A stretch of DNA of 13,206 nucleotides, taken from sequence record MN496305.1. One strand, 5' to 3'. Positions 4,940-6,417 of the stretch are shown here, piece by piece. How positions within the stretch are numbered: position 1 is the stretch's first letter; the number at the start of each line of letters is the position of its first letter. The position numbers and the translations under genes were made by a program. The notes under the pieces are model-generated. The model was not told the origin of the DNA. It did not search any database and was given only the letters and a program-made list of their open reading frames with translations.

Positions 4940-5176
4940 TCATGCTTGGGCACCGTTTCTATTGGGTTTCCATATTAGTGTTAGGGGGTAGTCTTGTCTT
5001 TCGCAAGACCCAGTCTCATCCCTTTCGCATAGCATGTACACGAGTTTTGCTATGTTATATGCAGTACTTGGGGATACCTCAAATTGAAAAATAATGTCTT
5101 CAATTGTGATTTGGCCTTTTTTCTTTAAAATTTCATACATGATTTGGGCCTTGTGAAATGTGTTTTGTCTAGGCAT
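4940..5176 (-). CDS. f112: Winged-helix DNA-binding protein, SSV1 F112 homolog (shorter)
   Basis: KAQIMYEILKKKGQITIEDIIFQFEVSPSTAYNI..CER matches F112; ATG 5176 follows a GGGTGA RBS; first gene of the leftward early operon. Confidence 0.85.
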   Translation of the reverse strand: MPRQNTFHKAQIMYEILKKKGQITIEDIIFQFEVSPSTAYNIAKLVYMLCERDETGSCERQDYPLTLIWKPNRNGAQA

Positions 5177-5183
5177 CTTTTCA

Positions 5184-5248
5184 CCCTCTATTCTTCTTCT
5201 ATTCATTCTGAGTTTAAAAGTTTTGCTCTTCTATTCTTCTTCTTTTCA
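5184..5248 (-). promoter_or_regulatory. T5-like early promoter with two pairs of 11-bp tandem operators
   Basis: Minus strand: TGAAAAGAAGA-AGAATAGAAGA, 21-nt spacer containing TTTTAAAC, then TGAATAGAAGA-AGAATAGAGGG; inverted copy of 5870-5934. Confidence 0.85.
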
Positions 5249-5307
5249 TTTTAGTTTCAACCAAGTGAGTATTCCTTATAATATAATTTGTATAATAGGG
5301 GTAAAAG

Positions 5308-5454
5308 ATGGGGTGTCAGAGAGCAGAACTACTGGCCCTTCTTGAGTATATTGAAGAAGAATGCAAAAAGAGAGACTGCATAAGCGTAGTGAGAGAGATA
5401 AAAGAGCGCGTAAAGAAGAACGCAATGCTAGAAGCGATAAACGGGCTGTACTAG
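5308..5454 (+). CDS. b49: SSV1 B49 (Tind transcript) homolog, 48 aa, not in the ORF track
   Basis: MGCQRAELLALLEYIEEECKKRDCISVVREIKERVKKNAMLEAINGLY resembles recalled B49 (MGCAKSEQVILLQYIKTNC..DC..I..EV.RRIMNNAI) and sits between the T5/T6-like promoters. Confidence 0.75.
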   Translation: MGCQRAELLALLEYIEEECKKRDCISVVREIKERVKKNAMLEAINGLY

Positions 5455-5477
5455 GCCAGCTCTTTCTATTCACTTTC

Positions 5478-5507
5478 TATTTTTTCTTTTTTTGTTTTTT
5501 TGTTTTT
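5478..5507 (+). terminator. T-rich terminator of the B49-like transcript
   Basis: Long oligo-T tracts about 25-55 nt after the stop, typical of Sulfolobales terminators. Confidence 0.55.
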
Positions 5508-5552
5508 ACTTCCAACAAAGTAAAAACAAAACTATAAAACAAAGCAATCTAC

Positions 5553-5575
5553 ATTATACAAACTGTTTGTATAAT
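5553..5575. repeat. Perfect 23-bp palindrome, candidate origin or protein-binding site
   Basis: ATTATACAAAC-T-GTTTGTATAAT, within an AT-rich imperfect inverted repeat (~5460-5650). Confidence 0.8.
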
Positions 5576-5610
5576 ATAGTTTGTTTTTGTTATAGTGGGT
5601 CTGTTATTGC

Positions 5611-5634
5611 AAACAAAAAAAAAAAAACAAAAAA
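5611..5634 (-). terminator. T-rich terminator of the F55-like transcript
   Basis: 13-A run plus flanking A tracts on the plus strand = oligo-T on the minus strand, about 20-40 nt after the RHH stop at 5653. Confidence 0.5.
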
Positions 5635-5652
5635 TGAATAGACAGAAAAAAG

Positions 5653-5817
5653 CTATGATTTCGTTAGCTCCTCTATCCTACGCCTCACTGCATCTATTAC
5701 AAACTCTTGTCTGCTAGTGTACCCAGCTTTCCCCATCTTCAAAATTTCATCTATTTGGTCTGCCAATGATTTTGGAATTTTCACCCCTACCCATTCGATT
5801 TTATCTTTTTTAGGCAT
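5653..5817 (-). CDS. f55: Ribbon-helix-helix repressor, positional and structural equivalent of SSV1 F55, 54 aa, not in the ORF track
   Basis: MPKKDKIEWVGVKIPKSLADQIDEILKMGKAGYTSRQEFVIDAVRRRIEELTKS: beta strand VGVKIP, helix, S-R-x-E-F-V..A RHH pattern; GAGGT RBS; leftward gene next to the T6-like promoter, like f55. Confidence 0.75.
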   Translation of the reverse strand: MPKKDKIEWVGVKIPKSLADQIDEILKMGKAGYTSRQEFVIDAVRRRIEELTKS

Positions 5818-5869
5818 CTTCGCTACCTCTTTTATTCTTATAGTATGTTTATCGTTAAAAAAAAGATGT

Positions 5870-5934
5870 TGAATAGAAGTAGAATAGAAGAGTAAAGTTT
5901 AAATATGAGAGTAGAATAGAAGTAGAATAGAGGT
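5870..5934 (+). promoter_or_regulatory. T6-like early promoter with two pairs of 11-bp tandem operators
   Basis: TGAATAGAAGT-AGAATAGAAGA, 21-nt spacer containing TTTAAATA, then AGAATAGAAGT-AGAATAGAGGT, then ATG 5941. Confidence 0.87.
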
Positions 5935-5940
5935 GGCAAA

Positions 5941-6240
5941 ATGGAAACCCCCAAACCCAAATACGAAATTGTTGGGGAAGAAGAAATACATTTTTTTGTA
6001 AGAACGTTGCGTGAAGAAGAACCACCATATGACAAATACATTGAAATAGAATTTGAGAAGCCTTTTGCTGATACTGGCAGATTCTATATTGGCGACATAA
6101 GCGTAGAATCCGTCGAAAGAGAGGTAAAATACATATTACAATTATATAAAATATATAACAAAACAGCTAATGGCGAATTGCAAAATGAAATACGAAAAGA
6201 GATCCTTATAACTTTAGCGAAAATTGCCGGCATGTTGTGA
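5941..6240 (+). CDS. a100: SSV1 A100 homolog
   Basis: PY..YI.I, LYKIY and IRKEILITLAKI match A100 (PY..YLHI, LYEVY, IQKEALLTIAKI); first gene after the T6-like promoter. Confidence 0.75.
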   Translation: METPKPKYEIVGEEEIHFFVRTLREEEPPYDKYIEIEFEKPFADTGRFYIGDISVESVEREVKYILQLYKIYNKTANGELQNEIRKEILITLAKIAGML

Positions 6241-6246
6241 TGCAAG

Positions 6247-6417
6247 ATGAAAGTAGTGACGTTTAAGCTGGAAGATGACTTGTTAAGGATTTTAGACTTA
6301 TACGCTATCAAGACGAAAACGACAAGAAGCGACGTAATTCGCCAAGCATTGATGTTGTTATTGAAGGATGAAATAAACAAAGCGAGAGCGAAAGTCGAAA
6401 CAATCCCGCTGAGGTGA
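6247..6417 (+). CDS. CopG-like ribbon-helix-helix protein (C80-type position), 56 aa, not in the ORF track
   Basis: MKVVTFKLEDDLLRILDLYAIKTKTTRSDVIRQALMLLLKDEINKARAKVETIPLR; classic VTFKL...RSDVIR.AL RHH pattern. Confidence 0.85.
   Translation: MKVVTFKLEDDLLRILDLYAIKTKTTRSDVIRQALMLLLKDEINKARAKVETIPLR

Follow-up and report, generated by a model that had tools for sequence, protein, structure and literature searches.

A probable diverged homologue of the SSV1 F55/B49 control module in Sulfolobus spindle-shaped virus SSV19

[quoted passage not shown] According to reviews, SSV1 F55 binds to tandem repeats of ATAGATAGAGT that are present in T5, T6, Tind and Tlys. The 2022 fusellovirus review classifies F55 and B49 as SSV1 singletons, and the SSV10 paper describes F55 and its promoter as unique to SSV1. 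Here, we analyzed sequence record MN496305.1 (13,206 nucleotides (nt), hereafter the window), in particular positions 5184-5934, for which a preliminary description made from the sequence alone had proposed an SSV1-type switch with a ribbon-helix-helix (RHH) gene, a B49-like gene and eight 11-base-pair (bp) operators, while correctly noting that the module has been described as SSV1-specific. The record represents the complete circular 13,206-bp genome of SSV19 (end-to-end match 100%), whose host, Sulfolobus sp. [quoted passage not shown] Taken together, our results make it probable that the SSV1 Tlys/Tind control module has a diverged homologue in 5184-5934, which employs the repressor mechanism proposed below. 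This reading is based on the homology of both genes, synteny, the operator layout, the co-variation of recognition strand and operator, and chromosomal integration.

The eight 11-bp units follow the consensus [A/T]GAATAGAAG[T/A] and flank two divergent TATA boxes, designated T5-like and T6-like, with two tandem pairs at each. On both promoters the pairs are separated by 21 nt with the TATA box inside, resulting in a mirrored 2+21+2 layout. The units were scored with a weight matrix built from the eight units themselves. The features of the region outside its AT-rich centre are listed by position, with protein lengths in amino acids (aa).

5184-5205, minus strand: T5-side proximal operator pair TGAATAGAAGA AGAATAGAGGG (scores 16.6 and 15.2), between TATA box and start codon
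5213-5219, minus strand: T5-like TATA box TTTTAAA, read from the sequence, in the 21-nt gap as in SSV1
5227-5248, minus strand: T5-side distal operator pair TGAAAAGAAGA AGAATAGAAGA (scores 14.1 and 17.3)
5276-5286, plus strand: predicted B49-like (Tind-like) TATA box TTATAATATAA, centred 27 nt before the ATG and placed by analogy to SSV1
5292-5302, plus strand: weak operator-like unit ATAATAGGGGT, a 9/11 match to AGAATAGAGGT (score <7.1)
5308-5454, plus strand: B49-like gene, 48 aa, convergent with the F55-like gene, unannotated in GenBank
5653-5817, minus strand: F55-like RHH gene, 54 aa, GenBank QGA87221.1 'putative transcriptional regulator'
5828-5838, minus strand: single unit AGAATAAAAGA, 10 nt upstream of the repressor ATG (score 11.9)
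5870-5891, plus strand: T6-side distal operator pair TGAATAGAAGT AGAATAGAAGA, immediately upstream of the TATA box and the BRE (the element recognized by transcription factor B)
5898-5905, plus strand: T6-like TATA box TTTAAATA, identical to SSV1 T6 box A
5913-5934, plus strand: T6-side proximal operator pair AGAATAGAAGT AGAATAGAGGT, covering the predicted transcription start at ~5928

When at most one mismatch was allowed, AGAATAGAAG matched nine times in the SSV19 genome against an expectation of 1.31 from 200 shuffles, the highest of which gave 5. Of these nine matches, eight fall in 5185-5933, seven of them within the eight-unit set and one corresponding to the single unit (5829-5838); the remaining member of the set, TGAAAAGAAGA at 5238-5248 (minus strand), has two mismatches to AGAATAGAAG. 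The scores of the eight units range from 14 to 17. In line with the preliminary description, all eight units were found where it had placed them, with two pairs per promoter and the TATA box in the 21-nt gap, and both small open reading frames (ORFs) were likewise located at the positions it had given. The T5-side proximal pair occupies the same position as the T5 proximal pair of SSV1, and the distal pair, 96% conserved in SSV20, lies between the T5-like and the B49-side TATA boxes. According to the SSV1 map, T6 transcription begins within the last unit, 30 nt from where the TATA box starts; with the same spacing the T6-like start of SSV19 would fall at ~5928 and thus likewise inside the last unit. 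A scan for sigma-70 promoters and hairpin terminators was set aside, since it is inapplicable to archaeal promoters.

The comparison with SSV1 reveals an extensive likeness. In both viruses a 54/55-aa RHH protein is encoded between the divergent T5/T6 early promoters and convergent with B49, and the genes follow the same order, namely F112-like, B49, AT-rich centre, F55 and A100-like. Moreover, in both genomes two tandem pairs of 11-bp direct repeats surround a TTTAAATA box that is the same in the two viruses, and the last unit covers the transcription start (predicted in SSV19); a further unit precedes the repressor ATG, and the AT-rich centre is bordered by operator-like units. In contrast, the gap between the pairs, 21 nt on both SSV19 promoters, amounts to 17 and 19 nt in SSV1, and the B49-side promoter of SSV19 is located about 60 nt from the T5 TATA box and lacks clear units of its own. 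The unit itself differs as well (AGAATAGAAG[T/A] versus ATAGATAGAGT), with only ATAGA and the 11-bp period in common. As the preliminary description had stated, the operator sequence is thus not that of SSV1: the best rotation matches at 7/11 positions, a level that 48% of composition-matched permutations also attain. Since this match is no better than chance, we do not claim operator homology from the unit sequence alone. The proposal that SSV19 possesses an independent version of the module has nevertheless to be replaced by that of a diverged homologue, as indicated by gene homology, synteny and promoter layout. Judged by every feature that can be tested on sequence, the SSV19 region is a member of the SSV1 F55/B49 module, the exception being clear sites of its own at the B49 promoter, where only the weak unit at 5292-5302 was seen.

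The 54-aa protein is 65% identical to SSV1 F55 over its full length (E 1e-23) and matches phrog_38461, the PHROG family built on F55 (1.1e-23). Its beta strand reads IEWVGVKIP. An AlphaFold2 model comprises an extended N-terminus followed by helices at residues 16-28 and 36-53, with a predicted local distance difference test score (pLDDT) of 84. The top Foldseek matches of this model are all RHH proteins (HicB3, Arc, ParD and NikR) with template modeling (TM) scores of 0.63-0.76, at E-values >0.1, and the F55 family profile aligns to the NikR RHH domain with an E-value of 0.026. F55 itself can be read in SSV1 at 5510-5677 (minus strand), and is unannotated in the SSV1 reference record. In addition, RHH proteins sharing 50-59% identity with the F55 core are encoded by an Ignavibacteria genome (L007 5001-5132; 59% identity) and by two metagenome contigs (L021 and L022, 3001-3144); the F55 core is therefore not virus-specific.

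The single unit at 5828-5838 has a score at chance level when taken alone, as about three chance sites per genome score at least 10. However, in all 18 stretches scanned, which include several copies of one virus, a unit of the matching type is located at most 30 nt upstream of each F55-type ATG. Mainly because a cognate unit precedes every repressor ATG in the 18/18 stretches, we accept 5828-5838 as a real site, and it is probably the autoregulatory site of the F55-like gene.

The convergent 48-aa protein shows 55% identity to SSV1 B49 (E 7e-17) and matches phrog_25221 (8.3e-18), and cysteines C3, C19 and C24 are invariant in an alignment of 12 members. Thus, both identities suggested in the preliminary description are in line with our comparison, while its notion that both genes had been missed applies to the B49-like gene and not to the RHH gene, which was already in GenBank. 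The B49-like AlphaFold2 model is a two-helix hairpin (pLDDT 83) for which no structural match was obtained in the Protein Data Bank (PDB), and the B49 profile likewise yielded no sequence match there. Between SSV19 and SSV1, the proportion of synonymous differences (pS) is 0.73-0.78 for the F55 and B49 genes and hence saturated, whereas non-synonymous differences (pN) amount to 0.26-0.27; the values for the B49-like gene are pN 0.27 and pS 0.73. The low pN at saturated pS indicates that both reading frames are under protein-level selection. The 2022 fusellovirus review raised doubt as to whether SSV1 Tind is translated, and the substitution pattern of the B49-like gene bears on this doubt over B49/Tind translation.

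Also on the B49 side, SSV19 resembles SSV1 in protein length (48/49 aa), the three cysteines, position and strand, and a predicted TATA box placed for a leaderless or nearly leaderless transcript; on the SSV1 map, the Tind start coincides with the B49 ATG. The preliminary description had assigned degenerate single units to the starts of both small genes. One of these, at 5828-5838, stands by virtue of the comparison of the 18 stretches, whereas its counterpart at 5292-5302 does not: it lies outside the top 30 weight-matrix sites and is indistinguishable from chance. The T5 distal pair, about 30-50 nt upstream of the predicted B49 TATA box, could serve both promoters. As a separate observation, the codons for YI(D/E)(R/E)E inside B49 (SSV19 5350-5362; SSV1 (L003) 5219-5229) spell an operator-like sequence of the own type in each virus, ATAGATAGAGA in SSV1 and GAAGAAGAAT in SSV19, the latter corresponding to the junction of two units. 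Either an intragenic site or simply E-rich coding could account for this.

Among 50,697 viral records, tblastn detected the repressor only in SSV19, SSV20 and SSV1. One IMG/VR provirus contig came to light in pattern searches, together with eleven hot-spring metagenome contigs (at least 63% identity). Word-indexed protein searches with both small proteins returned only self-matches, and the relatives were found by pattern-based locus searches and exact look-ups. Most of the added repressor contigs also encode B49, with the pair in either orientation relative to T5/T6. An exhaustive profile search of 1.84 billion representative proteins revealed only six B49 matches, five of them 48-57 aa in length. 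In addition, a 13,279-bp fusellovirus contig, NZ_JBLYQL010000032.1 (L006/L037), is filed under the assembly of Brevundimonas sp. FT23042, where it is presumably a contaminant. Apart from these loci, a distant B49 relative of 53 aa is encoded on a hydrothermal-vent contig (L028 4001-4564), where it is convergent with an ORF of 81-87 aa instead of an RHH gene; this ORF looks winged-helix-like by eye, no family search having been run.

The annotation history can account for the view that the module is unique to SSV1. In the orthogroup table of the 2022 review, OG0000105 contains the RHH proteins of SSV19 and SSV20 only, and OG0000106 contains only two wrong-frame ORFs. The B49 homologue is unannotated in both SSV19 and SSV20, and a wrong-frame ORF is listed in each; in SSV19, GenBank has 5361-5537 (plus strand), in another frame and without a family match in Pfam or PHROG, in place of the B49-like ORF. 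The RHH group thus has no SSV1 member, F55 is moreover unannotated in the SSV1 record, and the B49 homologues were hidden under wrong-frame ORFs.

In RHH proteins such as Arc, MetJ and CopG, alternate positions of the N-terminal strand contact DNA. The residues at the respective strand positions are W/G/K in SSV19 and SSV20, as opposed to Y/T/S in SSV1, the IMG/VR contig and the eleven metagenome contigs. Correspondingly, the loci with Y/T/S contain 6-14 SSV1-type units and essentially no SSV19-type units, while only the SSV19 type occurs in SSV19 and SSV20. These two viruses share 95-96% identity in their promoters and operators, 94% in the B49-like gene and 94.5% in the F55-like gene, compared with 60% in the neighbouring T5 gene.

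The fusellovirus genome labelled Brevundimonas, like the integrated loci related to it (L030-L042), harbours two F55 paralogues. The first one of the L031-type provirus (F55a), with 54 aa and the W/G/K residues, is located beside T5, and AGAATAGAAGT-type units are present at T5, T6 and its own start; at T5 and T6 these SSV19-type units show the 2+21+2 layout. The second paralogue has 68 aa and the Y/T/S residues, and ATAGATAGAGT abuts its own ATG. The Brevundimonas-labelled contig had been considered as evidence against a distinct specificity, as a Y/T/S repressor appeared next to SSV19-type T6 operators; this was dismissed when a further repressor, of the W/G/K type, was found beside T5 in the same genome. 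Two further observations concern this lineage: B49 adjoins T6 (L031 9400-10560), and 33 blocks of the collection list the 68-aa paralogue by itself, contigs of >1 Mb among them.

A natural exchange is provided by SSV21 and SSV22. From the T6 TATA box rightward these viruses are 95.5% identical to SSV20, while about 1.1 kb to the left is replaced. In the slot of F55/B49 (L023 and L024; locus 880-1560) they contain an RHH gene of the RH3/E73 type (L023:1206-1436, minus strand; Pfam RH3_dom 6.7e-35), and GGATTGATAG repeats are found at both early TATA boxes. The fusellovirus E73/E51 (RH3-type) proteins thus resemble the F55-like protein in being small RHH regulators, in SSV21/22 in the same slot, but they differ in belonging to another RHH family, in their GGATTGATAG repeats and in lacking a B49 partner. 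Taken together, the co-variation, the joint swap in SSV21/22 and the high conservation of promoters and operators between SSV19 and SSV20 support a repressor-operator pair.

In line with a temperate lifestyle, two integrated copies of SSV19, 99.9% identical, are present in the 2.55-Mb chromosome CP045706.1 (L025 and L027), which encodes the same RHH protein. The copies are opened inside the integrase gene, which matches the expectation for SSV-type integration, and on the basis of these copies SSV19 exists as a provirus. The two copies are located about 15 kb apart, and in one the annotation splits the tailspike gene into calls of 843, 249 and 100 aa in place of one of 1236 aa.

Based on these data and by analogy to SSV1, we propose the following mechanism. 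In the carrier or integrated state the 54-aa RHH protein would be made, and its dimers would bind the tandem units on either side of the T5-like and T6-like TATA boxes. One pair overlaps the BRE/TATA-upstream side and the other the transcription start, so that occupied pairs would block assembly of the transcription machinery and the early operons would be kept off. The single, weaker unit before the repressor ATG may confer negative autoregulation. On a drop in repressor occupancy, the B49-like transcript would be released before the others, its site being the weakest or absent altogether, and the 48-aa gene is envisaged as a real protein-coding partner of the repressor. Both small transcripts may end in the T-rich centre, in keeping with the description of SSV1. 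What this scheme says on DNA binding and repression, on the order of derepression and on release upon DNA damage is modeled on the work on SSV1, and the graded affinity and DNA-damage inducibility put forward in the preliminary description are likewise extrapolated from that virus. The lambdoid immunity region (lambda CI, OL/OR) offers a working analogy, which we take to be unrelated by descent: it likewise comprises a small repressor gene between divergent early promoters with repeated operators and autoregulation, and its repressor and operators are exchanged as one cassette, as seen for SSV20 versus SSV21/22. In contrast, the SSV19 protein has an RHH instead of a helix-turn-helix fold, its operators are direct repeats and not palindromes, its promoters are of the archaeal TATA/BRE type, and there is no self-cleavage domain, the sensor proposed for SSV1 being RadA titration.

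Several points weigh against the interpretation as an SSV1-type switch. The Pfam RHH_1 score of the 54-aa protein is 14.9 bits and thus below the cut-off of 20.5. The co-variation is derived from only two or three independent W/G/K lineages. The B49-side promoter lacks a convincing unit of its own, as compared with two sites reported for SSV1 Tind. Deletion of f55 or b49 leaves SSV1 infectious according to the 2022 fusellovirus review, which suggests that the module is modulatory and not essential. Finally, the literature consulted yielded no binding, transcript or induction data for SSV19, and a search for induction data on SSV19-22 was likewise negative. It is worth considering that the repressor-operator pair is real and serves for steady-state damping or as a superinfection-immunity cassette that does not respond to DNA damage. 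SSV19 would then not be UV-inducible, and the UV induction of SSV1 would depend on features that SSV19 lacks. Reviews report UV induction for SSV1 only, the SSV19 B49-side promoter is without clear sites, F55-type RHH cores exist in bacteria without a link to induction (Ignavibacteria, 59%), and the cassette was swapped as a whole among the near-identical SSV20 and SSV21/22, like immunity regions of other temperate viruses. However, both partner genes of the SSV1 switch are under purifying selection in SSV19, and the units have kept their places with respect to TATA box and transcription start. Moreover, RadA is to our knowledge universal in archaea. The sensor proposed for SSV1 in the 2022 fusellovirus review is the host RadA. 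On balance, we regard a cassette devoid of a DNA-damage response as rather unlikely, albeit deserving serious attention.

The 11-bp units might also serve as replication iterons or other origin elements that are bound by another protein and flank the proposed origin between the early promoters, with the RHH gene as a mere neighbour. The Tind-Tlys region of SSV1 has been proposed as a replication origin, operator-like units flank the AT-rich centre in SSV19 (5462-5483 and 5636-5646) as well as in SSV1, and the centre contains a conserved 12-mer. This explanation is nonetheless improbable, as the spacing between the units and the TATA boxes that they bracket is fixed, the predicted transcription starts are overlapped by units, the RHH recognition strand and the unit type go together down to the site before each repressor ATG, and the centre is not conserved between SSV19 and SSV20. 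In addition, F55 is reported to bind the units of SSV1. Even less credible is that the repeats represent low-complexity, purine-rich sequence arisen by chance, or generic promoter elements that host factors read without a specific viral partner. The units are indeed purine-rich, their likeness to the SSV1 operator is no better than chance, and the single units are inseparable from background by score. In contrast, none of the 200 shuffles reached nine matches, the phasing is exactly 11 bp, the 2+21+2 layout is mirrored on both promoters and recurs in the L031-type provirus, and in SSV21/22 the repeats are replaced together with the RHH gene.

Beyond the assignment of the SSV19 region to the SSV1 module, the data tentatively point to a wider scheme, which we consider possible without favouring it. 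F55-type repressors would fall into at least two specificity classes (Y/T/S-ATAGATAGAGT and W/G/K-AGAATAGAAGT) that form separate recombining immunity cassettes, SSV19 and SSV20 would be inducible by DNA damage, and B49 would be a protein partner. If this holds, recombination moves cassettes and operators among fuselloviruses and can stack them in one provirus, and SSV19 and SSV20 would be the second and third cultured DNA-damage-inducible fuselloviruses. SSV20 versus SSV21/22 would then be a natural near-isogenic pair for finding out if the cassette by itself is enough for inducibility and immunity, and B49 would act in the switch as a conserved protein partner with cysteines and be more than a transcript.

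The module of SSV19 and SSV20 furthermore offers comparative material for the RadA-sensor model, as both viruses are cultured, their hosts are known and the virion structure of SSV19 has been solved. The SSV19 module adds a second operator-repressor pair for work on specificity, and the cassette swap between SSV20 and SSV21/22 lends itself to tests of sufficiency. The advance lies in reach and annotation, correcting the view of a module unique to SSV1, and does not introduce a new principle.

The AT-rich centre between the two convergent genes comprises the following features.

5455-5652, no strand assigned: AT-rich central region with oligo-T runs on both strands, likely a two-way terminator
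5462-5483, minus strand: degenerate third tandem pair AAAATAGAAAG TGAATAGAAAG, just past the B49-like stop codon, with a 10/11 self-match at period 11
5636-5646, plus strand: single operator-like unit TGAATAGACAG, just past the F55-like stop codon and kept in SSV20

The corresponding region of SSV1 (Tind-Tlys) has been described as a bidirectional terminator besides being the proposed replication origin, and it is likewise flanked by operator-like units. In SSV19, 5462-5472 has a weight-matrix score of 10.0. The centre contains an inverted repeat with arms at 5474-5518 and 5604-5648 as well as a near-palindrome at 5541-5587, within which the 12-mer CATTATACAAAC occurs once (5552-5563). The same 12-mer is found once in SSV1 (L003 5414-5425) and in ten metagenome loci (L010-L019), and is absent from SSV20; it is a candidate origin or terminator element. 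The centres of SSV19 and SSV20 cannot be aligned (34% identity), and the GTCTGACAG repeats of the SSV20 centre are absent from SSV19.

The two early operons begin with the following genes.

4940-5176, minus strand: F-112-type winged-helix gene, first of the leftward T5-like operon (Pfam PF09645, E 3.6e-16)
5941-6240, plus strand: A100-like gene, first of the rightward T6-like operon (phrog_4746, 1.6e-9), unannotated in the SSV19 record

For the F112-like gene, the true start is likely the ATG at 5176 and not the GenBank start at 5206, which we doubt because it would lie inside an operator and upstream of the predicted transcription start; the SSV20 homologue begins with MPRQ. The A100-like protein reaches 24.9 bits with Pfam DUF5517, just under the cut-off of 27 bits, and its SSV20 homologue is annotated. 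The GenBank coding sequence that overlaps the A100-like gene (5838-6041, minus strand) is without a family match in Pfam and PHROG. Downstream, a second RHH gene (6247-6417, plus strand, 56 aa; Pfam RHH_1 5e-9) encodes a C80/aCcr1-like regulator, which the 2022 fusellovirus review mentions for SSV19-22.

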